Source: Anthoceros angustus
Taxonomy: Eukaryota > Plantae > Anthocerotophyta
Direction of reading: 5' to 3'
Length of the DNA: 64,000 nucleotides
Assembly: GCA_010909165.1 (NCBI GenBank)
Contig: MU008161.1
Coordinates: 558,001-622,000 of the forward strand
Shown: positions 8,566 to 44,542 of the stretch, piece by piece
Layout of the letters: each line of letters begins with the position of its first letter
Numbering within the stretch: position 1 is the first letter of the stretch
The notes under the pieces: generated by a model
Database searches by the model: none
What the model was told of the DNA's origin: nothing
What the model saw: only the letters and a program-made list of their open reading frames with translations
Program-made: the position numbers and the translations under genes

Positions 8566-10654
8566 ATGGCGAGGCGCTTCTGCCTTGTGTCGCTGCCGCT
8601 GCAGGGCTCCGCCAATGAAACGTGGACCACGCTCCAGCAGACCCTGTCAACGATTGCTTTCGACACGCCCAACTACAGAGTGAGACGGTGCCTGCGGGTG
8701 CTGCAGACCTACTGGATGTGCACACATTGTGTTGGGGTGTGTTAATTTGCTCGCGATTTGCTTCACATGGCTTGTGCTGCTGCTGCAGCTCCGGATACCC
8801 GATCTGAGGGTGGGGACTCTGGACTCTCTGCTGTCGCTCACTGACGATATGCACAAGGTCGGTGGTGCTGCCGGTGTCTGTGTTTCTGTGTTTTTTTCTC
8901 CGCTTCTGGGTATGGGAGAGGGTGGATGGGTGGGGGGAAGGGGCTGATGTCGTCGTCGTTGCTTGCGGCGCAGGCGAGCTCGATGGTGGAGGGAGTCGCG
9001 CATAAATTGCGTCGCCAGATTGAGGACTTCCAGAGACTGGACGCAGGTGCTGAGTCGACTGCCTTGACTGTCAATGGAGTCCCTATTGATACTTACATCA
9101 CCGGGTTGGTAAACTTGCTAGTGATCTGGCATCCATTTGTCTGCTGTCTGGAGTGTTGTGTTGACCGGCCGTTGGGTGGGGTTCTGGTTCTCAGCTTCAC
9201 ATGGGATGAGGCCAAGTATCCGGTCGTGAGTCCACTGAGAGAGATAGTGGACGCAATCCACAAGAATGTGGCAGAGCTTGACGATGACATGAAGGTGATG
9301 GCCCGTCCAGATTTTCTGCTGTTGATGACCTACAGACTTTGGCGCACCAGTATTCTGATTGGCTACTTGTGGAAGCACAGGTCCGAGTTGCTGAGGCGGG
9401 TGGTGTGAAGAGCCAACTGAATGCCCTGAGCCGCAAGCAAACTGGCAGGTAGCTATCTACTGTCATCTGGACTGACAGTTGCGCAAATCTCAAACAATGT
9501 CAACAGCCTGTGGTGTCGAAGTGTCTCACTGTTTACCTGACATGGATGCAGTCTGCTTGTGCGGGACCTTTCAGCATACATCAAGGCCAATGATGTGGTC
9601 AATTCTGAGAATCTCACTACGCTCTTGGTGATTGTCCCAAAGTTTTCACAGAAGGAGTGGATAGCGAGTTACGAGACCTTATCCCAGTGGGTGGTACTGA
9701 ACATCTTTACCTTTCAACTTGCTCGTTATCAAAATCACTCAGCCAGTTGTACTGTTCTGAAGCTAACACCTGTTGTGCAATGCGTGGTGTTCAAGGTTCC
9801 TCGGTCATCAAAGTTGTTGTTGGAAGAAAATGATTACGCTCTGTATACAGTCACGCTTTTTAAGAAAGTAGCTGACGATTTCAAGGCAGCTTCCCGTGCA
9901 AAGGGCTTCCAAGTAAGCTCACCTTCCCTTGTCTGTTCGGTGTATTTCGACCTGGGAAGTTTTTGTCAGTCACACTAACAAAAGGAGGTAGGTAGGTCCG
10001 CGAATATGCCCATGATCCAGAGGCCCAGGAGAAACAGTCAGCGGAGCTTGTTACTCTCACAAGAGCCCAAAAGAATCTGCAGACTTCGCTAAAAACTTGG
10101 TGTTATGCCAGCTTTGCAGAGGTGCGAATTCTCAGCCTGTCAGCTTCTTGTCTAGCAATGACCTCAGGATAAATGTGTGATGTGTGAAGCTGGCTGGCTT
10201 GTGGGTGCAGACTGTCAAATGTTGGATGCACTTGCTTGCGATTAAACTTTTCGCCGAGAGTATACTCCGATATGGGCTGCCACCAGCATTTGTGGTACGT
10301 CTCGCTTTTTGTCATATTTGCATAAGCGAACAGCACTTTCTGGACCATCAGATTGCTGAACTGTTTGTGAATGTTTTTCTTATATTGCAGGCAGCTGTTA
10401 TAGCCCCAAATCCAAAAAATGAGAAGAAAGTCAGGCAACTTCTTGATCAGCTCTCAGGAACATCCGACAGGTCTGATTCTTTCAATTCTATCTGACTTGG
10501 ATCAGTGCTTCTGCTCGCAATAGGCCCTAACAACGTCTTTTCTGCTATCAGTTCACTCTGGAAAGGAGAATCCGAGGCAGCGCTGGCAGGATTGACTGGT
10601 GGGGAATCTGAAGTTTATCCTTATGTGTCACTAACCATGAACTTAGGTGGTTAG
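8566..10654 (+). CDS. VHA-C: V-type H+-ATPase subunit C (multi-exon)
   Basis: Spliced product contains IPDLRVGTLDSLLSL, FTWDEAKYP, SENLTTLLVIVPK, VPRSSKLL, WMHLLAIKLFAESILRYGLPP and YPYVSL. All introns are GT-AG; stop TAG at 10652-10654. Confidence 0.95.
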
Positions 10655-11261: not shown

Positions 11262-12913
11262 ATGGCCGCTAAACAGCGTGCCACAGAATTCGCTGCCTTA
11301 CTACTAGCTTTGCTCGTCGTGTCATCTCAAACAGTGTCACATGCACTTGGGAATCCTCCCTCGACACCATCTAACAAGCCCAGCCATGCAGCCGGGATCA
11401 AGTCGAAAACATACTGGTCTCCAGCAATCAGGCTGGGCCCGGGGGAAGTGAGCAACAAGAACTACAAAATCGAGTTTCCGGAAGGTCACATTGCCATCAA
11501 GGGGCTGGGCGCGGAGGTGGTGGATGCGAAAGGCAACTCTGTTCCTCTGCACGAACTCTATCTGCATCACTGGGTCATAGCAAGGTGCTTCCCTTGTAGA
11601 CGATGCAAGCGCAGCGCAGCTCAGCTCAGCTCGTCCTCTGCCATGAATCATAATTGAACAAACTTCCCACGGCCAGCAGACAAACGCGCGTGACTGACCT
11701 AATCTGGTGCAGGCTGTTTGTGGAGAAGACACGCAATCCAAAAGGCTTGATCTCCCCGGAATTCAACACCTCGGTAGTGATCGTCCCTAACCAAGGACTG
11801 TGTGACGACGGCATCCTTCGCCAGTACTTCGGGCTGGGCTCCGAGACCAGGCGTACCAACTACGCCGTCCGTGATCCCTACGGCATCATCGTCGGCGACC
11901 CGAATTTGATACCCGACGGGTTCCAGGAAGGCTGGGCGCTGAATGTGCACGCCATCGACACCCGCGCAACTTTGGATCCGAGAGGGTGCACAGAGTGCAG
12001 GTCTGTCCTAATCTTCACTTCCACGCGTCACCAAAGCTGCAGATGGCGGCGCTGAAATCTCAACTTCTGTGAACTCATGCTGGCTTTGGCTATGGTGCAG
12101 ATGCAACCTGTACAACGTGTCGGCAACCAAGATCCCTAAGGACTACACAGGCGGTTTAGCCTGCTGCGGGGATGGAACGCACTGTGCTCTCAAAGCGAAT
12201 CTGAAATCTCCACCCTGGAGGAAGACCTACTACTTGAAGTACACGGTTGAGTGGATCGACTGGGACTCCGATGTTGTGCCGGTGGGAATATACATAATCG
12301 ATGCCACAGACACTGGAGAGCGACACAAATCTAACAAAGACGCCTTCGGATGCAAGGTGCTGCCAACTGCTCCCCTGTGATCCCCTGCCTTTTGAAAGAC
12401 ACTCCTGCTTGCTCACAACTTCATGGCCTGTTGTCCCGCAGATAGAGTACGAGGTTCCCGCTTGCAACACGAGCCTGAGGTCGGACTCGTGCATCCACAT
12501 TGCAGAAGCCACCACGCCTGCCCTCCCAAAGGGTGGCCGCGTGGTGTATGCTGTGGCACACCAACACGCTGGAGGCATCGGCTCCACTCTTTACCACCAG
12601 GTTCGCTTCGGTTTGAACGTCTCATTTCTCAACTGGCTCGCATCTCGTTTCAGCAACCATGGCATATTTTGAAGTGCGAGTGAAATAATTTGGTCATGTT
12701 TTCCAGGACGGTGGCGAGATTTGTACCTCCGAGCCCATCTACGGAAGCGGCAAAGACGCCGGTGATGAAGCAGGATACATTGTGGGCATGACCGCATGCT
12801 CCCCTGAAGTAGAGGTTAAGACGGGTGACAAGCTCCGCATGCAGTCCAGATATAGCTCTATCCGAGCCCATACCGGCGTTATGGGTCTTTTCTATGTTTT
12901 GATAACAGTGTGA
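11262..12913 (+). CDS. SURNod19 (stress up-regulated Nod19) family protein, copy 1; signal peptide, no C-terminal TM
   Basis: Six exons encode LGPGEVSNK, GHIAIK, VPLHELYLHHW, QYFGLGSETRRT, LNVHAIDTR, ECRCNLY, YYLKYTV, HQHAGG, GDEAGYIVGM and HTGVMGLFY. Confidence 0.92.
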
Positions 12914-13551
12914 AATCCCAATAGAAATGTGGCTCCGAATTCTGTCCTAAGCAGGACCAGGCGTGGCAAGTTGCAATCCTTCCTCCAATATTGCTTATCC
13001 ATATAATTTCAGTCCTTTCCGTAACTCATTGTTTTTTTTTACTTTTGCTTCTATATACTGTAGCTTTTATGGAGATAACTATCATTACTTATTGCTCCTC
13101 ACCTAATTTTAAAATTATTTTTGATAAATTCAAGAGGTCATTATGTACTGAAGCCATTCAATTTGGTGTAGGTCGAGAGTCAAGATGGGCGAGCTGCGAT
13201 GGTGCGTTTGATCTGAAATTTGAGTGAGTTTGATGTGAAGTTGCCTTCATCTGGTGCATGTAAGGATCGGAATGTGAATACACGAGATGTGAAGAGAACA
13301 TGATAGGGCATCATAGCACATGTAAAGAACGGGAATACATACATGGAAGATGTGAACATACAATCATTGGGCATGATGTCGTCATGTAAGCGGCGTGTTC
13401 GTTATCCTAACCGTCAGAGGATCGCATTCCATGTATAAGAAGAAGAACCGAGCCACTCCTTCCTCGTGCTTCCAGTTCCAGCAATTGGGTTCCACTTTCC
13501 CTTCCCAAACTTGTCCCAATTGCCGCAACTACGAAGATCGCAGCCTCCGAC

Positions 13552-14154
13552 ATGGCCACTTTCAAGCATCTGTGGGTACGAGCCTCCGTCCTCGCCACCC
13601 TCGTGGCATGCGTGCTAGCTCGGGGAGGCGGCGCCGGCGCCGACGCGCTCACGGAGCCGCAGAGAAGCGCGGTCCTCCAATTCTGGCCGCAGGTTTACAA
13701 CCAGACGGGACGGCAGAGCCTGCTGGTGACGGTGCCGCCGGTAGGACCGAACGGCTTCGGCCAGATCATCGTCTTGGACACCAACATCACCAACAGGCCG
13801 GAACCCAACTCCACCCAGATCGGGAAAGGCAACGGTGCCGTCTTCTTCGATAATCGGGAGTACCCGGGCTACGAGAATGCGATAACGCTGGTGCTCAACA
13901 ACAATAGCGGCGTCCCCCAAAACAGCAGCGTCAACTTTGAGGGCTTCACGCCCTACCCGTTCGTCTTCCCGCAGCCTTACAACTACTCCGTTGTGGGAGG
14001 AACCGGCGCTTTCGCCTGTGCCAGAGGAGTCTCCACCCAGTCTGTTTTCTCCTCCGACGCCACCCTCACCACCGTTAACGAAATCGCCTTCATCGTCTTC
14101 GGCTGCGGGTTCAACCCCGACAACGCCTTCTACCTCTTCTTCTCACAGCCATAG
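13552..14154 (+). CDS. Dirigent-like secreted protein, single exon, 200 aa
   Basis: N-terminal hydrophobic signal, FGQIIVLD and YSVVGGTGAFACARG (dirigent VVGGTGxF..ARG motif), several NxS/T sequons and strongly C/G-ending codons. Confidence 0.75.
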   Translation: MATFKHLWVRASVLATLVACVLARGGGAGADALTEPQRSAVLQFWPQVYNQTGRQSLLVTVPPVGPNGFGQIIVLDTNITNRPEPNSTQIGKGNGAVFFDNREYPGYENAITLVLNNNSGVPQNSSVNFEGFTPYPFVFPQPYNYSVVGGTGAFACARGVSTQSVFSSDATLTTVNEIAFIVFGCGFNPDNAFYLFFSQP

Positions 14155-14353
14155 CCATAGCCATAGCCATAGCCCCATAGCCCCATAGCCCAATAGCCCA
14201 ATAGCCCCATAGCCCCATAGCCCCATAGCCCAATAGCCCCATAGCCCCATAGCCCCATAGCCCAATAGCCCCATAGCCCCATAGCCCCATAGCCATAGCC
14301 CCATAGCCATAGCCCCATAGCCTTAGCCCCATAGCCATAGCCCCATAGCCATA
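14149..14353. repeat. Compound (CCATAG)/(CCCAATAG)/(CCCCATAG) simple repeat
   Basis: More than 25 short units; the array begins at the last codon and stop of the dirigent-like ORF. Confidence 0.95.
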
Positions 14354-14805
14354 GTCTTGTTTGTCTTAGGTGGAGTGTGGAGACGGTTGAATGGAAGTTT
14401 CGTTGCCCGCACGGCGTGATTGTAGATCTATCATTAGCCGAAACCAGCTAAACGAGTGGTGTAAATGCTGCGTGGGGACACGCGGACTGCACAGGGAACT
14501 TGCTGGAGAAGGAGGCAGGATGCTCACCAGCATCCTTGCTGCCTCGATAATACGTCATCTCCGTGAGTCATTGAGCGCTCTCTTACGAGATCGCTCGACT
14601 GACGAGCCTCCACGGATGATGCTGTGGGAGAGAGGGCGCCAGGTGAGCAGGCCGGCGCTTGGAAGTAGGTTGCTTGACACAATTGGAGTAGGATTGTAGG
14701 AGTAAGAAGGCTCGGCCATTGCGGGGCTTGAGTTTTTGACGATGACCCACGTAATTGAATTTCGACCGTTGCAGGTGGCAGCGTGGGTGATTTGAAGAGG
14801 CACCC

Positions 14806-16799
14806 ATGGAACGCAGCACCGGCACTGCAGGACTGGCGTTTGTGTTTGGATTGCTCTGGTTTTGCCAGAATGTAGTGTCGCTCGAATTGCCCGTGTGGAG
14901 TACTTTCAGCAGCTTCCAGCATGGGGCTGGGGTCAAGTCTCGGTCTTTTCTGTCGGAGCCCATCACGCTGGGCCCCGGGGAGGTCAGCAACAAGCTCTAC
15001 CGGATGGGGTTTCCCCAGGGCCATATTGCGATAAAGGGGTTCGATGGGGAGTTGGTGGATGAGGAGGGGAATTCTGTGCCTTTGCATCAGGTCTACCTCC
15101 ATCACTGGCTGCTGACACGGTGAGTCGTGGTGAGTGGGTGGATGTGAAGTGTGTGGTGAAGCAGGCAGGTGGGGAGGCCGTGGCTCTGACATTATTTGTG
15201 CAATGGAGCAGGTTCCATGTCGCAAATACGCCGGATCCGGATGGCGATTTCTCGCGGTATTTTAACTCTACAGTTGTCAAGCTTCGGAATGATGGGATTT
15301 GTCAGGACATGGCTTTGGACCAGATCTTTGGACTTGGTGCCGAGACCAGGCACACCAACTATGCCATCCCTGATCCGTATGGGATAGTTGTCGGTGATCC
15401 GGATGTAATACCGGCGGGATTTCATGAGGACTGGTTGCTTAATGTGCATGCCATTGATACTCGGTCAGCTCTGGATAGGATGGGATGCACTGAATGCAGG
15501 TAAGGGTTGTACAGATCCTTGTTGGCTTTTCTGTTTTCAAGCTCTCGGCTGACTGATATTCTGACAGCTAAGAGTTTGGTTTGATCTTGTGCAGGTGCGA
15601 CCTATACGATGTGGATGTCTCCTCCAAGTATGGAGAAGACCTAGCCAACTATACTGGGGGTGTGCTTTGCTGCGATGATGGATTTCAATGTGCACTGACG
15701 GCCAATTCTGTGCCTGGGAAGAAGACATACTACTTGAAGTACACCGTGCATTGGGTAGACTGGAGTCCAGCTGTTGTGCCTGTAAGAGTTTACATTTTTG
15801 ATGTCACGGACTCAAGGAAACGGAAAAAAGGGGACCCTTACCTGGGTTGTGCGGTAGGTCATTTATTAACTTCCTGCATCCAGATTTTGTTGATTTTGTT
15901 GGCGAAGAAGAGAGCCACAAAGTGAACTTGCGTGATGCACATGTGACAGGTCGAGTTCGATGTTCCTGTTTGCGACAGGAGCTTGCCATCAGTCTCATGT
16001 GTGCACACCGTTACCGGAACTATGCCACCTCTGCCTGAGGGCGGGCTAGTCGTGTATGGTGGCGGACACCTACATGCTGGAGGCTTGGGACTTACCATGT
16101 ATAATGAGGTGGGCTCTTTCTTTCGTCTCAGAAATTTCAAATTTTCGGCAATATGGACCAAGCAGCTTTCGTAGCTCGGAAGGTCACTGATACGAGTGTT
16201 TGAAGTGAAAGCCTGAGTGTTCTCCCTTGAGACTAGTGTGACCATGAACGAGTTCATGTTGTTGCAGGATGGTCGTGAGATTTGTACCTCAGAACCATTC
16301 TACGGGACAGGGACAGGGACAGCAGCAGGTGATGAGGCTGGCTACATTGTTGGGATGAGTGTATGCATGCCAACACCTGGAACTGTGAAAGTATACACCG
16401 GTGAGAAGCTCCAGCTTCAATCTCGGTACAGTTCACTTGCAGACCATACTGGTGTGATGGGACTGTTCTATCTGCTAGTGGCAGACTTCGATGCTTCTAC
16501 AGCTGAAAACTCTCAGCTTCAGTCATCCTCTTCCCCGTTGACTACGGATGCCCTGGTACAGTCCAGTCGCCTTATCTCTTCCTGTTTGGTGTTCACCTTA
16601 GGGCACACTATACATGCAGCTTCTCAGATAAGCACATGGTGCTAACCAAGTCCTGCATGTGGCTTCCCATCAGGTGTCTGCTTACGTGACGACAATATTC
16701 GGGCTTGCAGGAGTTATTGCTGCATGTGGCATCATCGTTGTAAGCCTTGTGTTCTTCAAGCGAAAGAAAGAGCTTCAACAATACGAGCGCCTTGGTTGA
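14806..16799 (+). CDS. SURNod19 family protein, copy 2; signal peptide plus C-terminal TM and YERL tail
   Basis: Same intron positions as copy 1 plus a seventh exon encoding a hydrophobic helix and KRKKELQQYERLG*. Motifs YLHHW, LNVHAID, HLHAGG and HTGVMGLFY are present. Confidence 0.92.
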
Positions 16800-17577
16800 G
16801 TGTGGTTGAGGGAGACGTAAGCTCTCACAATATGTGGTGACGTAAACAGTGGAGTGTAAAAAGAATGACGAGATGTCTAGTATGTACTTGCCTGTAGGCG
16901 TAGGATGACAGCAAGAAACTGGAATGTCTTGGCGAGAAGTCCAAATATCTGTACCCTATGCAACAACTGTATTGAAGTAGTTCGCGGGCCCAACCCGACC
17001 TCACCGGTACACAGCATTCTCTCACACCATCATCCGACGGCATATGGATGCATCATTTCCGCTTCTAGAACATAGAATACTCGGCGAGAGGGGAAGAAGG
17101 ACCACAAGTTTCTTGATTACGAATGCGATTCTTGGAACAGAGCACTCGTCGCGCCATCACCGACGCACATAGCTGACACACCGACGAGAACCTTGGCCAC
17201 GCACATTTCTCATGACAAATAAGTTCACTACAATATAAAAATGAAACAAAAAAGAGCTAGGTGGTTTCTCCCCTCGCGGACGGGAAGCTGTCCAGAAGCT
17301 GGTCGAGCATATTATTGCTCTTCTCGCAGCCTCTATAGATTCCAGGCCCTGGCCGGAGCGAGCTTGTTGAGCAGGCAAGAGCTGTTTAGCCACAGAAGAG
17401 GAGGAAGAAGAACAATTTGCAATTTGGTTTCTGAAAGGCTCAGGGAAGAGGAATGCAGTGCAGCTCGCGAGCGTCTGAAGGTGCGCGGCTTCGAGTTCCT
17501 AGATTCTCGTGAATTGGACATTTTTTGTTCAAGGTGCATTGTTGGAGATCTCGGGGCAGCTCTGATGGTTGTGGGAA

Positions 17578-19534
17578 ATGGGCGCAGGTATGGGCGCCAT
17601 GGCCCGTGAGCGCAGGAGCTGGATTCTTGGAGTCGGGTTGGCGTTTGGTTTCGGATTGCTCGTTTTGTCCCAGAATGCAGCCGCTCGGGAGTTGCCTGAA
17701 GCTACTAGTTTCAGCAATTTCAAGCGAGGAGCAGGAGTCATGTCTCGGTCGTATCTGTCCCATCCCTTCACGATGGGCCCTGGGGACGTGAGCGACAAGT
17801 ATTACCGGCTTGAATTTCCGAGGGGCCGGATAGGCATCAAGCGGTTCGACGCCGAGGTGGTGGATGAGGAGGGCAACTCTGTCCCACTGCACGAGGTGTA
17901 TCTGCATCACTGGTTGTTGGTACGGTGAGTCATTGTGCGTGAGCCTGAGCTCTGACTTGCAGGTGTCAGGGGCTGTGAGTGTGCAAGACTGACCTCGTAT
18001 CTCACATCATTGGGATGATGCAGGTACCATGTGGCGGACATTCCGGACCCGAATGGTCGTTTCAGCGAGCTCTTCAATTCTACAATTATCATGGCTCGGA
18101 ATGATGGAGTTTGTCAGGACACGGCTCTTGACCAGATTGTCGGAATTGGTTCTGAGACCAGGCGGACGAACTATAACATCCCTGACCCCTACGCCATAGT
18201 TCAGGATGATCCGGATGTCGTACCGGCAGGATTCCATGACGACTGGTTGCTTAATGTGCATGCCATTGATACTCGATCGGCTGTGGATAAAATGGGATGC
18301 ATAGAGTGCAGGTTGGTTAACGTCCTTGCTACTTGAAGGTCCTGTTGTTTTGCAGACCTTCACGTGGATTTTCTTTCTGGTGCAGGTGCAATCTGTATGG
18401 GGCGCAGTATACAGGTTCTGCGAATTATTCTGGGGGTATATGGTGCTGCAGAGATGGGTATCGTTGTGCAGTGACCGGTGAGCCTTTACCCGGGAAGAAG
18501 ACATACTACTTGAAGTACACTGTGCATTGGGTGGACTGGAATCCAAGTGTTGTGCCTGTGCGAGTATACGTGCTTGATGCAACAGATTCAGGGAAACGTG
18601 AAGAAAACAGGCAGAGTGTGGGATGCCTGGTGGGTTTATCATTGCCCTCATTCATTGTTTGGACTGTTTTGGTATGGAGGCTGTGGGACATGAGAGTTAG
18701 ACAGCCTGCAGCCTACAAGAAGTCTGACTCTCGATGCGTGTGTGGCAGGTTGAGTACAGTGTTCCTGCCTGCGACAGGAGCTTGCCCGCAGCGTCATGTG
18801 TGCATGTTCGCGAGGGGAATACGCCACCTCTGCTTAAAGGTGGTCGGGTTGTGTACGGTCTCGGACATCAGCATGCTGGAGGATTGGGAACAACTCTGTA
18901 TGGTGAGGTGCGTTGTCTTCTGACTTGAAGTTTCAGGCTTTCAGGATTATGCAACCAGCATGCCGTGGAGGGGCTGTTGGGGAAGTGATTTTTCTAGTAA
19001 AATTCGGTCTTAGTATGGTGACCAGAACTAGTTCATGTGGTTGCAGGATGGTCGTGAAATCTGCAATTCAGAGCCCATTTACGGGACAGGGACAGCAGCA
19101 GGGGATGAAGCTGGCTATATTGTTGGGATGACCGTGTGCTACCCACAAGTCAACATCTACACTGGAGAGAAGTTGCGGGTTCAGTCTCGTTACAGTACGC
19201 TTGAAAACCATACCGGTGTGATGGGACTTTTCTATCTGCTAGTGGCAGACTCCGACGATGCAGAAGCTTCGATTGTTGATCTTGCCTCATCCTTCTCCTC
19301 AATGACGCAAGATGTTGTGGTACAGTCCATTGCCTAAAAGTTATCTGCTGGTACTTAGTGTGTCTGTAGAGGAGAAAGGTTTAGTGGACCGCACAATTTT
19401 AATTTATTGTTCCGTCTTGGCAGGTGTCTGCGGTAACATTGGGGAAGTTAACAGCTGCTTGTACAGTCATTGTTGTGATTCTTGTACTTCTCACAAAACG
19501 GAGACAGGCCAACGATTATGAGCAACTTGGCTGA
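17578..19534 (+). CDS. SURNod19 family protein, copy 3; signal peptide plus C-terminal TM and YEQL tail
   Basis: Seven exons with YLHHW, LNVHAID, HQHAGG and HTGVMGLFY; last exon encodes a TM helix and KRRQANDYEQLG*. Start may be 17578, 17590 or 17599. Confidence 0.92.
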
Positions 19535-36975: not shown

Positions 36976-39168
36976 TCAGTCGATTTCCGTCCTTCGCCGC
37001 TGCTTGAGAATCTGGACTCCCATGTATCTGCTCAACCAACCAGCGCATGCAAGTGAGTTGCAAGTACATCTGTGACTGGTGCTCTGCCCACACAGCATCC
37101 CATGACTCTCACCTTCCAAGCATCATGACAGTCGCCTGCGGGTTTGCACCTGGAGAGACTGTCCATGCAGAGCCATCCACCACACGGAGGCTATCCACCC
37201 CCTTCACCAGATGGCGGCTATCTACCACAGAGCCGACGCGGCAACCGCCATGGTAGTGCCAGATGGTGCTCACGGTATCCTTGCACCACTTCTCCAGCCT
37301 ACGGGTGTCATTCATGTAGCCGGGGAGCAACTGTTTGGCCAGGTCTGGAAACGAGGACAAGTTACGCGAAGCCTGGCCGTATCCGTACGTGAAGTTCAGA
37401 AACCCCTTGGTGCGCACAACGCGATCGACCACCCGAATTCCATCCACGCACAACCGTAGATCCTCAGGGTTCTCGTAGTAGTTAAACCGCACCAGAGGAG
37501 AGTCCTTGACATCAGCGCTGCGGAGCTTGAGCCACCCTGACGACCGGGGCCGGTATAGCTGTGACACATCCACCAGAATTATTGCACAAGAGTGGGCGTC
37601 AGTGACAGGATGATGATGGGACAGCGACAACACTGGCAAGAATTTCACGGAACATGCTCGGCACGTCTCGCCTTTTGGAGAATGAAGCCTCCTTGTACGG
37701 ACGGAGCGTGAGGTGAAAGTGACAAGTCCCGCAAGCGGAGCGTGAATTCTTGCAACCGGTCCAGGCTGCGCTCTCCAGGCGGCAGGCTGCTCAAGTCGAT
37801 CCCTCCCGCCACAACCAGCATCCCGCTTCCGCTGGCGCCTTCGAAGATGTTGCCTTGGCCGGTAGAGCCGACGACCTGCACGAAGGATCCTTCAACCGGG
37901 CTCGGCGATGGCACGAACACGGAGTTCTTAGGGTTGTCAGCCATGCCCTCCCCCACGCCCTCCAGCTCCACCTCCTGCCGGATGCCGAACTCCGCCAGCT
38001 TCGACGCCGGCCCGATGCCGCTCAGCAGAAGCAGCTGCGGGCTCCCGAGCGCTCCCGCCGAGAGCACCACCTCCCCGCCCGGGCGCAGCAGAGCGACGTG
38101 CTTGGCCCCGGAGAGATCCTTGTACTCCACACCGTAAGCCTGGCGATGGCGGGACTGGCTGGAGGCATTGCGGAGCAGAATCCGGGACGCGTAGGCGTGG
38201 ATGTAGACGGTGAGGCGGGCGGGATCCGCGTACTGGAGGAGGTCGGCTGCCGTGTGGCGATGCGCATTGGCGTCGAAGATGGAGCCTCCGACCTTGGTTC
38301 CCAGCACGTGCCGGTACGTATCTCCGTTATCCGGCGCGACGCCTGCTTCCACAAGCCCCCGCCTGAGGGCCTCCTGCCACGGGCCGAGCGTCGGGAATCC
38401 GGCCACCACTCGCGCAACCCAGGCGTACGAGGCCTTCACCAGCTCCGCGTCCCAGCCGAAGCTCCGCACGTCGTCGTCGCTGGCGTAGGTGAAGAAGCCC
38501 GCGTTCACAGCACTTCCCCCTCCCAGAACGTTGGCTCGGAGATTCACCACCCCGTCTTCGGAGATGAACCTCTGGCCGGCAGTGGTCGGCGTCGTGGCTG
38601 CCTGTACTTGGATCCGAGTGTATCCCACAGCTTGCTGCACATCGGGGTCTGTGTATGGAAGACCACCCCGTTCCAGCAGCAGGACCGTGAAGTTCTGGGA
38701 CAAGGTGGCGGCGAGGGGGCATCCCGCCGTGCCCCCACCTACTATGATGTAGTCGTAGAAGGAATCTTCCGCTGGTGCGAAAGTTGCATTGTGGACGAAG
38801 GTGTAGTCGGGATCCTTGTCGATCAAGCCTGCTCATAAGCCACACTTGAAAATCAGACCTGAATTGTACATGATGCAATTTGACGCTGACAGGCATATCA
38901 TCCGGAGTTGTGAAGGCAGTCACTCAGGCTTCTTGCGAGCAGCATTTATGGACTCATCAGTATGTTAAGTTCCGTCCATGAGAGAGCTTCATGTCTGACT
39001 TCGATGAAGCTGTCCTGGAAATCGTTCGGAACCTTAAAAAAAAATCCATATCCAAGCAAATGCAAAAGGCAAGCTTCAATCAGAGGCAGGTCCAGTGTAA
39101 CCTGGCTCACACCAGACCCGGCGCAGCAAAGTGCTCACGGCAAGACAGCTCAAAAGGACTTGTAACAT
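36976..39168 (-). CDS. GMC oxidoreductase, HOTHEAD/mandelonitrile-lyase-like (4 exons)
   Basis: Signal-peptide exon, then YDYIIVGGGTAGCPLAATLS, ANVLGGGSAVNAGF, LSAGALGSPQLLLLSGIG, TIWHYHGGC, LRVVDGS and PGANPQATVMMLGR|YMG. Intron 37559-37671 is GC-AG. Confidence 0.93.
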
Positions 39169-41752: not shown

Positions 41753-43978
41753 TCAAACAGGTTGTCTCGAGAGTGGCCTAGACCACTCCCCACTGCGCAG
41801 CCATGTTTGAACCGCGTCACCAGATGCCAAGAGAAAATGGAGCATTTCCCGCCCATCTTCAGACATAGTAGACTTCTCAGTAAAAGGAGATTTTCTCGCA
41901 GTCAAATAAGAGATCACTGCATCTTTCTTTCTCTGTTCTGTGTCTACCCAGCGACCCCTCCCTGATCCAGTTTCTATCATAACTACTTTGGGCAGCTCTT
42001 GGTTCTCCTCGAGCACCTGAGACAGTGTGCTCATCCACCACTCAACAGCACATTGGGATGCGCCCAGGGAGAGGTGGCGTAAATGTAGACGCCACACTGT
42101 AGGCGCACGGGATTGAATATCAGCAAATACTCCCAGATTCACTGAAAGCACAAGCAGATCTGACGCCCTTCCCTCAATATTCTTCACCTGGCAAAAATCA
42201 ACCATGGCATTGATGAACCTACGGTAGGTCCCAGCCGGATACCTCTGTGTTAACAAATGGAGCGCACGGTGAAGCTCTTTCTCCTGTGCCACCGGAGAAA
42301 TCAGTTTCTGCAACGTGTCGTGCAACTCCAGGTTACCCTTCTTAAAAATCCCAAAGACAGTATTCCGCTGCTCATCGTCCTCACAGAGAACCAAGATACT
42401 GAAAAGACTGCCCCATAGCATATCATCTGGCTCACATCCACAGCTGATCATTTCATCAAAGAGCTCTGCAACTTTCACAAAATCCTTCGCTTGTCCATGA
42501 GCCTGGATTAGTGAAGTATATGTGACAACATCCCTAGAGAATCCAGACCTAGTCATTCTTGAAAAAACATTCAGTGCCTTGTCCTTGCTGCCGTGCTTAG
42601 CATACAAGTGCAGCATTGTCTTGTACGAGTATGCATTTGGTGGCATCCCAGATCTCTGCATGTCATTGAATATCTTTTCTGCTTGCTCCTCAGTACCATA
42701 CTCCACACAATGTTTAAGAACTGAGTTATGCACAACCGCATCACAACCCCAGCCTTCCCGCTGCATTCGTTGGAAAAGGACTAGACAATCCTGGAATTGC
42801 CCACCTTTACCGTAGGCATCAATCATAGAGCTAACGGTTACAGCATTGGGCTTCAAACCAGAAGTGATCATCTCATCCATCACTCCTGCAGCTTCGGCTG
42901 TTCTTCCTAGATCTCCAAGGATCCGGATCAGAATGTTATAGATAACTGCGGTAGGCTTCATCCCTGACTTCTTCAGTTCCTTGTAAGTCCTCTCAACGTC
43001 TGTGTACCTACCAACCTTGCCCAACATATTTAAGAAGGTACCATATGTCACAATATCAAGTTTCCAGCCAGAACCTCTAAGCTCATCAAAGAGAGCCAGT
43101 GCTTCCTTTACTTTACCCGCTTTCGCATACATGTCTAGGACAGAACAATACGTCACAGCATCTGGAACACAACCGGCATTATGCATCTTTTCGTACCATT
43201 CCAAGGCCTGTTCATGGCGATTGCACCTGCTGGCACAACTGATCAAAGTGCTGTAAGTGATGTTATCAGGAAACACACCCTTCTGAATCATCTCCACCAC
43301 CAAACCCTCTGCCAGGTCCCACTGCCCGCCTTTTCTCAGCAGCTTCACCATGACATTGTAGGTGAAGACATTCAAGTCATACTCTCTGGATTCGGCCCAC
43401 CTGAAAAAGGGCAAAGCTTTCTCCCACCTTGCCAGGGAATTCAAAATGGTCACCAAGCTGCGTGCACTCAAGGGAGTCTCCCAGCCATCCATAGCCAGTG
43501 CTACCCCTGCCTCTGTCTCATTGCAGCCCTTCAACCTGCCCAGGACAAGAGGTAAAACCTGGGAAGGCCTTTCCACTCTTCCAGCCTCCACAGAACCTAC
43601 ATTCCGGTCAGTAACCAGCTCCGAACCCTGTCCTGGTCTCCACCTATCCACCACCACCGCATTGCCTGACCTGGCCTTCCGACTGACAGGGGTCCCAGTA
43701 CCGGATGCAGAATCAGAGGGCGCCGCGCCACCATCCTGTTTACCAGACACTCTTTGAGTGGAGAACTCCAGATGCAGCTTCCGCAACTGCTTGGCCATGG
43801 AGGAGGCGCCTGAATTGCTGGATCCCGCCGTCTCATCAGGAGAAACCGTGGGTGCAGCATTTTTGCTCACGCAGCACACATAACGAAATTTACATGCTCT
43901 CCTGGTGTCTGAGCACGACGTTGAAGGGAGAGCGTGGCTCACGCCCAGAAGCTGCATCGAATGAGAGGATACAGCCAT
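41753..43978 (-). CDS. P-class PPR protein with C-terminal SMR domain (SOT1/SVR7-like), probably plastid-targeted, intronless
   Basis: About 9 tandem 35-aa repeats (e.g. PDNITYSTLISCASRC, PDAVTYCSVLDMY) and SMR motifs WRLHLRHLSLGA and IETGSG. First ATG is at 43978; the ORF track start is TTG. Confidence 0.9.
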   Translation of the reverse strand: MAVSSHSMQLLGVSHALPSTSCSDTRRACKFRYVCCVSKNAAPTVSPDETAGSSNSGASSMAKQLRKLHLEFSTQRVSGKQDGGAAPSDSASGTGTPVSRKARSGNAVVVDRWRPGQGSELVTDRNVGSVEAGRVERPSQVLPLVLGRLKGCNETEAGVALAMDGWETPLSARSLVTILNSLARWEKALPFFRWAESREYDLNVFTYNVMVKLLRKGGQWDLAEGLVVEMIQKGVFPDNITYSTLISCASRCNRHEQALEWYEKMHNAGCVPDAVTYCSVLDMYAKAGKVKEALALFDELRGSGWKLDIVTYGTFLNMLGKVGRYTDVERTYKELKKSGMKPTAVIYNILIRILGDLGRTAEAAGVMDEMITSGLKPNAVTVSSMIDAYGKGGQFQDCLVLFQRMQREGWGCDAVVHNSVLKHCVEYGTEEQAEKIFNDMQRSGMPPNAYSYKTMLHLYAKHGSKDKALNVFSRMTRSGFSRDVVTYTSLIQAHGQAKDFVKVAELFDEMISCGCEPDDMLWGSLFSILVLCEDDEQRNTVFGIFKKGNLELHDTLQKLISPVAQEKELHRALHLLTQRYPAGTYRRFINAMVDFCQVKNIEGRASDLLVLSVNLGVFADIQSRAPTVWRLHLRHLSLGASQCAVEWWMSTLSQVLEENQELPKVVMIETGSGRGRWVDTEQRKKDAVISYLTARKSPFTEKSTMSEDGREMLHFLLASGDAVQTWLRSGEWSRPLSRQPV

Positions 43979-44542
43979 AGCAGCAGATTTACACCCCCAA
44001 ACGCCAGTTCGAAGTCCAGCGTCCCATGTCCGGTTAGGTGCCAAAATGGAGTCGAGGTCGTGAAGCCTTCGACTACCGTTGGCTCATGGGTTTAGGGCTT
44101 TGTTCCAAACCTAACATCCAAGCCTCCCGGCTCGGTAGAATATTTCCGTCCGCTCGGAAATTTCCCATGTAAAAACTTCCACTAATAAAATGCATGTACA
44201 TGTGTAATGAGCTCCACAGCTTGGAGTAAAGCCTCCCGGCTCGGTAGTATATTTCTCTCCGCTCGGTAACTTTCTCCTATAGTAAATTCTACGGAACTGA
44301 GCTCCATAGCACAGCTTGGATTACTCAACCCAAACAAGGGTTCAGGGTTCACGATTCAGATCGCTCATACTATGAAGTCACATCGCTCATACTATGAAGT
44401 CACAGAATTCCACTATATGGGTTGTGGTACCTAATCTTTGTTTTGGTTTGCGTAGTTTTGTTTTGTGTTGGCCTTAATAAAATCATTTTAGGATTTTCAA
44501 TATAACACTCAAAGGACTTCAGAGTTTTTTCACGTCTCCGTT

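Follow-up and report, generated by a model that had tools for sequence, protein, structure and literature searches.

Here I consider a tandem array of three SURNod19 genes in the hornwort Anthoceros angustus and the chemistry that their products might carry out. The array lies in a stretch of 64,000 nucleotides (contig MU008161.1 of assembly GCA_010909165.1, positions 558,001 to 622,000; hereafter the window), where a Pfam scan of all exon-bearing open reading frames found three intact paralogs of the family (PF07712) at 11262-19534 on the plus strand, named G1, G2 and G3 below. SURNod19, a widespread plant family, keeps reappearing in studies of nodulation, cold, copper, oxidative stress and virus infection, and the argument developed here connects it with peptidylglycine alpha-hydroxylating monooxygenase (PHM) and dopamine beta-hydroxylase (DBH), the two-copper enzymes that make amidated peptides and noradrenaline in animals: going by a predicted structure, the lumenal part of the SURNod19 proteins is most likely a remote homologue of the catalytic core of such type II copper monooxygenases.

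The gene models were built by hand from stop-to-stop frames and junction sequence, with an arithmetic check, and all searches with the window sequence were run exon by exon, whole-protein work being done on natural full-length relatives. G1 occupies 11262-12913 (five exons, 410 amino acids), G2 14806-16799 (six exons, 477 amino acids) and G3 17578-19534 (six exons, 473 amino acids), all on the plus strand, with the ATG of G1 at 11262 and the stop of G3 at 19534. The introns are all GT-AG (13 counted), measure 74-159 nucleotides and have identical positions and phases in the three genes, and none of the models contains an internal stop. Exon by exon, the SURNod19 E-values range from 1e-5 to 1e-33; single exons score 40-114 bits against a PF07712 gathering score of 25 bits, except for exon 4 of G2 at 24.2 bits, and in each gene the exons jointly span model positions 3-376/377. 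Single exons were also compared with PDB sequences (phmmer) and gave chance matches only, to MARTX and caspase-2 at E 0.07-0.9, which were discarded.

In G1, exon 1 (11262..11584; Pfam E 1.7e-23, donor GT at 11585) encodes the signal peptide, the first strands of the N (CuH-like) domain and the motif YLHHW, with the codons of H102 and H103 at 11565-11570; exon 2 (11713..12000; E 2.1e-31, AG/GT junctions) carries LNVHAIDTR, with the H187 codon at 11948-11950, and a conserved N-glycosylation sequon; exon 3 (12101..12356; E 3.4e-26) covers a Cys-rich insert between the domains and the first C-domain strands; exon 4 (12442..12600; E 1.7e-13) holds HQHAGG, with H329 at 12559-12561 and H331 at 12565-12567; and exon 5 (12707..12913; E 2.2e-10) holds HTGVMGLFY, with M401 at 12881-12883 and the stop at 12911-12913 directly after the domain. 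G2 repeats this layout with signal peptide and YLHHW in exon 1 (14806..15119; E 1.5e-21, supported by its junctions; H99/H100 codons 15100-15105), LNVHAIDTR in exon 2 (15212..15499; E 9.2e-33; H184 at 15447-15449), the Cys-rich insert and C-domain start in exon 3 (15595..15853; E 6.7e-25), HLHAGG in exon 4 (15950..16108; E 1.8e-5; H327 at 16067-16069, H329 at 16073-16075) and HTGVMGLFY followed by an acidic/Ser-rich stalk in exon 5 (16268..16555; E 6.4e-31; M404 at 16457-16459), to which exon 6 (16674..16799; Kyte-Doolittle 19-residue maximum 2.69, and junctions) adds a C-terminal transmembrane helix and a short basic tail ending in YERLG, of the YxxL type. G3 likewise has signal peptide and YLHHW in exon 1 (17578..17924; E 4.6e-22, and junctions; H110/H111 codons 17905-17910), LNVHAIDTR in exon 2 (18024..18311; E 1.3e-30; H195 at 18259-18261), the Cys-rich insert and C-domain start in exon 3 (18386..18629; E 1e-20), HQHAGG in exon 4 (18749..18907; E 2.6e-11; H333 at 18866-18868, H335 at 18872-18874), HTGVMGLFY and then a stalk in exon 5 (19047..19319; E 4.6e-29; M405 at 19221-19223), and a transmembrane helix with a tail ending in YEQLG in exon 6 (19424..19534; Kyte-Doolittle maximum 2.36, and junctions).

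A sequence-only reading of this DNA had proposed that the three diverged proteins keep the complete copper-ligand pattern of PHM/DBH-type monooxygenases, together with a signal peptide and conserved cysteines, and that the genes had expanded locally, and at the level of the genes all of this stands: the copies are three and in tandem, the models are intact, and in exon-by-exon alignments YLHHW, LNVHAIDTR, H-Q/L-H-A-G-G and SRYS..HTGVMGLFY (exons 1, 2, 4 and 5) are invariant and in the same order. The candidate ligands are accordingly the HH pair, a third His, the two histidines of HxH and a Met, that is, H102, H103, H187, H329, H331 and M401 in G1, H99, H100, H184, H327, H329 and M404 in G2, and H110, H111, H195, H333, H335 and M405 in G3. 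Each protein begins with a hydrophobic segment typical of a signal peptide and has 12 cysteines in its lumenal part at positions equivalent among the three, and the N-glycosylation sequons of exons 2 and 3 are conserved among the paralogs. With a synonymous divergence (dS) of 0.84-2.5 and a ratio of nonsynonymous to synonymous divergence (dN/dS) of 0.13-0.29, the copies are old and under purifying selection.

The G1 model stops right after the domain and has no membrane anchor, helix or tail, and in G2 and G3 the C-terminus consists of a transmembrane helix and, behind it, a basic tail containing YERL or YEQL; judged from these sequences, the three most likely belong to the secretory pathway, G1 as a soluble protein and G2 and G3 as type I membrane proteins whose short cytosolic tail bears a YxxL motif. 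Tails of the form Tyr-x-x-hydrophobic are shared more widely, with YERL and YEQL in the window (16674-16796 and 19424-19531), YESI in Amborella, YQSV in the liverwort Riccia and YQSL in the representative P0010, and the motif looks like a conserved tyrosine-based sorting signal.

Predicted fold and candidate ligands

A profile of the three exon-2 peptides, run against 1.84 billion cluster representatives, retrieved 116 proteins, none of them identical to a product of the window and among them representatives from Amborella, Populus and the chlorarachniophyte Lotharella, and these were assembled into a family alignment of 112 rows covering the 116 representatives (50% clustering). In the six candidate ligand columns, 77-91% of the rows not gapped at the column show the expected H/H/H/H/H/M, many of the exceptions being visibly broken gene models, and these columns are the best-kept His and Met of the whole family; the pattern is not a chance feature of G1-G3. 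The third His, that of LNVHAID, is present in 81 of 93 rows, and another widely conserved His stands four residues before the Met.

One of the relatives, P0014 (KAL3699794.1 from the liverwort Riccia sorocarpa, 432 amino acids), is complete, with signal peptide, domain, transmembrane helix and a tail with YQSV, and it is 36-52% identical to the window products over exons 1-5, which make up the catalytic domain, and 24% and 38% over the short exons of transmembrane helix and tail. An AlphaFold2 model of P0014, computed with the 112-row alignment, is all-beta and has two domains, with a predicted local distance difference test score (pLDDT) of 90.4 and a predicted template modelling score (pTM) of 0.83. 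When Foldseek was used to compare this model with the PDB, human DBH (4zel) came out on top with an E-value of 1.3e-8, ahead of about 28 entries for rat PHM; the probability was 1.0 and both domains were covered in every case. VIA-align matched residues 208-498 of 4zel_A, which is the DBH catalytic core without the DOMON or dimerisation domain, at Z 17.0 and a root-mean-square deviation of 3.3 Å over 252 residues, and PHM 6ala_A at Z 17.0 and 3.2 Å over 239 residues, with other PHM entries at Z 13-15.6. A search independent of Foldseek, through 48,161 representative chains, placed PHM, PHM and DBH at ranks 1-3 (Z 14.4, 13.7 and 10.5) and peptide:N-glycanases (PNGases) at 8.3 or below. The two-domain jelly-roll that the copper proposal implies is therefore what the model shows, and, the best matches (6ALA and 4ZEL chain A) being closed conformers, its two domains are in a closed arrangement. 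The nearest non-SURNod19 cluster by language-model features was a green-algal one with Cu2_monooxygen and Cu2_monoox_C (score 0.80), which is rated a lead only.

The ends of the structural alignments permit some ligands to be placed on those of PHM and DBH, whose numbering follows the published one (PMC4846438, PMC6123673). Model residues 380-383 correspond to PHM 324-327 in every PHM row, a constant offset of -56, and model 381 and 379 correspond to DBH 498 and 496 (offset +117), which puts M370 of P0014 on PHM M314 and DBH M487 on the assumption that the final 13 residues, one long strand, are free of gaps. A second model was made of a fragment, P0014 76-299, that begins at the HH strand, ends just after HxH and breaks both domains (pLDDT 86.5); its top three among 48,161 chains were PHM 5wm0_A, PHM 1sdw_A and DBH 4zel_B, at low Z of 3.6, 3.5 and 3.0, and there was no PHM among the 33 chains listed for it by Foldseek. 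In these low-Z matches fragment residue 1 aligns to PHM 104 and DBH 259, so that H79/H80 fall on PHM H107/H108 and DBH H262/H263. Between the second His of HxH and the Met the spacing is 73 in both P0014 and DBH, 70 in PHM, and 70, 75 and 70 in G1, G2 and G3, respectively. The LNVHAID His, which is located on a strand, follows HH at a distance of 74-84 residues, compared with 64 in PHM and 70 in DBH.

Could the order of the motifs be a coincidence in a His-rich family, and the match that of any generic double jelly-roll? Double jelly-rolls are common, capsid proteins appear among the matches at Z 5-6, and the matches of the fragment model are weak, but PHM and DBH outscore all other double jelly-rolls by a wide margin in two independent searches, a fragment that breaks both domains still ranks PHM, PHM and DBH first among all the chains with offsets that put HH on HH, and the HxH-Met spacings resemble those of the two enzymes; such a coincidence is already disfavoured and I regard it as highly improbable. 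A second alternative arises from the fold group that comes next in VIA-align, PNGase F, at Z of 8.4 or less, since its structures match over both domains (Z 7-8.4) and there is no sequence-level match to copper families: the proteins would then have a PHM/PNGase F fold with no redox metal, would bind glycans or peptides or hydrolyse them in the manner of PNGase F, and would keep their His and Met for structural reasons. I consider this quite improbable, as the Z scores of PHM and DBH are about twice those of the PNGases (17 versus 8), the HH pair and the Met map onto ligand positions of PHM and DBH, and no other His or Met in the family is as well conserved as the six. On the strength of the models, homology with PHM and DBH in fold and ligands is very probable.

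Copper chemistry weighed

Support of another kind comes from the regulation of the family in legumes. In bean, Nod19 has been validated by experiment as a target of miR398b, a microRNA that spares copper by silencing copper proteins, and the Nod19 transcript drops under copper deficiency and rises under excess, parallel to Cu/Zn superoxide dismutase (PMC3882225), which fits a cuproprotein without proving one. In Arabidopsis, NOD19 fused to a yellow fluorescent protein (YFP) was seen at the cell periphery and in vesicles, and a null mutant, nod19-1, exists (PMC10326430). Papers published between 2014 and 2026 are in line with the remark of the sequence-only reading that no biochemistry has been assigned to SURNod19: those of 2014, 2022 and 2023 call the function of SURNod19/Nod19 unknown or elusive (among them PMC3882225 and PMC10326430), and a 2026 study of the soybean family mentions neither copper nor monooxygenase. 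Within the open full-text literature, subscription journals being outside its scope, no link was found between SURNod19, MtN19 or Nod19 and monooxygenase, PHM, peptidylglycine or PNGase F, and the fold relation may already be recorded in SUPERFAMILY, CATH, ECOD, Pfam clans or public AlphaFold searches. A search of the ESM Atlas by shape returned an Actinomycetota cluster in which 88% of the members carry SURNod19 and 25% the cupredoxin domain PF00127, with template modelling (TM) scores of 0.58/0.60 over 278 residues; a blue-copper electron donor within the same protein would suit an acceptor site of the CuH type.

In the mechanism that I propose, G1, as a soluble protein, and G2 and G3, as type I membrane proteins, would pass into the secretory pathway, acquire about six disulfides there and load one copper per domain at the interdomain cleft. 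In the N-terminal jelly-roll, the electron-transferring CuH would be liganded by the two adjacent histidines of YLHHW together with that of LNVHAID, and in the C-terminal jelly-roll the O2-activating CuM by both histidines of the HxH in HxHAGG and by the methionine of HTGVM. Once a lumenal or apoplastic reductant, possibly ascorbate by analogy with PHM and DBH, had supplied two electrons and so reduced both coppers, O2 would bind at CuM and one oxygen atom be inserted into a C-H bond of the substrate.

Several observations weigh against this mechanism and need to be set beside it. The protein that was folded is the Riccia homologue and not a product of G1-G3, and its model resembles the closed conformers of PHM and DBH (6ALA, 4ZEL chain A; PMC4846438, PMC6123673), the catalytic relevance of which is debated. 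A full-length family profile of 27 rows finds no PDB sequence at E<=10, PHM and DBH included, and 0 of the 27 full-length members match Cu2_monooxygen (PF01082) or Cu2_monoox_C (PF03712) at E<=10, a threshold at which their Pfam scan yields SURNod19 plus noise only; since no profile (hidden Markov model, HMM) matches a sequence, the link to PHM and DBH is structural and not one of sequence-family membership. The placement of the ligands is one of positions along the chain, read from the first and last aligned residues of structural alignments. At the far end of the fragment, residue 224 corresponds to PHM 245 and DBH 415, which puts H295/H297 at PHM 241/243 and DBH 411/413, one residue off H242/H244 and H412/H414, this end being a frayed, low-confidence terminus with a pLDDT of about 50-70. 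For the third CuH His (PHM H172, DBH H333) the case consists of order, location on a strand and conservation, and in five representatives (P0043, P0050, P0054, P0057 and P0113) the residue in that column (H154 of P0014) is a Met, perhaps the sign of a subfamily whose CuH site is altered. The ligand pattern first proposed has held up for the most part: the HH pair and the Met fall on PHM/DBH ligands by the alignment ends and HxH comes within one residue, and the third CuH His is a candidate. Arg240 of PHM, two residues before H242 and the anchor of the peptide glycine carboxylate, is replaced by V in G1 and P0014, by G in G2 and by L in G3, and because this Arg is absent the substrate of PHM is not simply transferable to SURNod19. 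Finally, the connection with miR398 is one of regulation, observed in legumes, and the SURNod19-cupredoxin fusion is a putative one, being an automatic cluster annotation.

One could also accept copper at PHM-like sites and doubt that any substrate is monooxygenated, in which case the proteins would be oxidases that shape apoplastic reactive oxygen species and ascorbate, or copper buffers or sensors. Nod19 transcripts do track copper supply and oxidative-stress treatments together with CSD1 (PMC3882225), no substrate is known for SURNod19, the P0014 model is closed so that both ligand sets approach each other, and there is the extra family-wide His near the Met. Against this, all characterised proteins of the fold that carry the set of three His plus two His and Met are monooxygenases, the Met ligand is the hallmark of an O2-activating CuM site, and strong purifying selection on a large two-domain ectodomain together with family expansion fits diversified substrates better than buffering, which makes copper binding of this kind an unlikely end of the story. 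I therefore keep to monooxygenation: by analogy with the known enzymes, copper-dependent monooxygenase activity of SURNod19 proteins is likely, and that G1-G3 in particular are secretory-pathway two-copper monooxygenases with a substrate to be found seems, if anything, a shade likelier, copper binding, reductant, chemistry and compartment being what I infer from model and analogy.

If a PHM/DBH-type centre is indeed present, it would provide concrete chemistry for an orphan family, namely a hydroxylation that depends on a reductant and O2 and takes place in the secretory lumen or apoplast, and would explain why a microRNA of the copper economy targets the Nod19 transcript; the orphan SURNod19 family would become open to direct experiment, and the known range of an enzyme class usually discussed for animals and some algae would change. 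A broader proposal, to which I would give slightly less than even chances, is that SURNod19 belongs to the non-coupled two-copper monooxygenases as a deeply diverged branch of them that has gone unrecognised, present in land plants, some algae, fungi and bacteria, acting in the secretory pathway and apoplast on lineage-specific substrates (peptides, amines or phenolics), expanded in tandem, tied to the copper economy via miR398 and in bacteria sometimes fused to a cupredoxin donor.

The wider family and the surroundings of the locus

The best 120 of a word-index protein search, all of them close relatives, were plant proteins only, with no informative domain fusion; their source names do not go beyond "Stress up-regulated Nod 19", "MtN19-like" or "uncharacterized", and none is named monooxygenase. 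The family has been reported among the secreted proteins of the fungus Venturia in one paper, and a survey counted 24 SURNod19 genes for soybean and, across 35 species, 307 proteins; tandem expansion is typical of the family. Many public annotations carry 'double' SURNod19 proteins of 800-1000 amino acids (P0001, P0138-P0152), which are probably read-through fusions of tandem genes, since the same Amborella locus is also modelled as proteins of 465 and 392 amino acids, and tandem arrays seem the rule for the family. Further bacterial clusters in the ESM Atlas (Gemmatimonadota, Actinomycetota) that have no Pfam family share the shape at TM scores of 0.53-0.56. When bacterial and archaeal genomes were searched with the exon-2 alignment of the three paralogs, the sole match was a contig of 763 base pairs at about 2.8x coverage in a Tissierella creatinini assembly (SUSS01000119.1), whose peptide is 63% identical to SURNod19 exon 2 and which is most likely plant DNA contaminating a bacterial assembly. 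On the contigs of the Riccia homologue no informative neighbours of its gene were found.

The surroundings in the window are eukaryotic, intron-containing DNA of a plant-type genome, and neighbouring open reading frames match V-ATPase subunit C (an exon at 8926-9405, plus strand), DUF2358, a GMC oxidoreductase (a PF00732 fragment at 37645-38823, minus strand), BTB, a long PPR protein (41753-44041, minus strand) and KRI1. Between G1 and G2 lies a single-exon dirigent-like gene (13552-14154, plus strand; PF03018, E 4.7e-17). Dirigent proteins steer phenoxy-radical coupling, which needs an oxidase, and the adjacency of such a gene to a putative copper oxygenase is suggestive, as a single case; a metabolic cluster built on this neighbour was considered and rejected, there being one case only. 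Just downstream of the dirigent gene, at 14167-14350, is a tandem repeat of an octanucleotide in 24 copies with 86% matches, and because of this repeat the region shows repetitive His-Ser and Gly-Tyr-Gly open reading frames in all frames.

Comparison with known systems

The known systems with which G1-G3 can be compared range from a shared superfold to outright family membership. PNGase F and the peptide:N-glycanases (1PNG, 1PGS, 9LWG) have the same two-jelly-roll superfold, and differ in having 4-7% identity, no copper ligands and the chemistry of hydrolases. At the other extreme, G1-G3 are clear members of the family that includes MtN19, Arabidopsis NOD19 (At5g61820) and the Nod19 proteins of bean and soybean, and the layout of signal peptide, domain and C-terminal helix is the same in Arabidopsis NOD19 (PMC10326430), G1 differing in that it has no anchor.

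DBH, with tyramine beta-monooxygenase and MOXD1 (4ZEL), shares the core, has H262/H263 and M487 where the Riccia homologue has H79/H80 and M370, and has the HxH-Met spacing of that homologue. SURNod19 is unlike DBH in that it lacks the C-terminal dimerisation domain and the DOMON domain, of which none appeared in Pfam scans, the N domain beginning about 25 residues after the signal peptide; the disulfide pattern also differs, SURNod19 having for example no Cys directly after the Met, and the membrane anchor is a C-terminal transmembrane helix in SURNod19 in contrast to the N-terminal signal anchor of DBH.

Compared with PHM (the monooxygenase part of PAM), SURNod19 has 11-15% identity and no HMM-level sequence match, carries an insert of about 55-70 residues (GCxECxC...CC...C) between the third His and the C domain and a longer loop between HH and the third His, and is without the lyase (PAL) partner domain of PAM. 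With no PHM Arg, no DOMON domain and a Cys-rich insert of its own, SURNod19 is assigned neither the substrate of PHM nor that of DBH. What it has in common with PHM (1PHM, 1SDW, 6ALA) is the two-domain jelly-roll core, at Z 13-17 over about 240/300 residues, the order of HH...H in the N domain and HxH...M in the C domain with HH and Met coinciding by the offsets, the HxH-Met spacing in the case of G1 and G3, and a secretory-pathway ectodomain rich in disulfides; PAM, moreover, also exists as a membrane-anchored form with a short cytosolic sorting tail.

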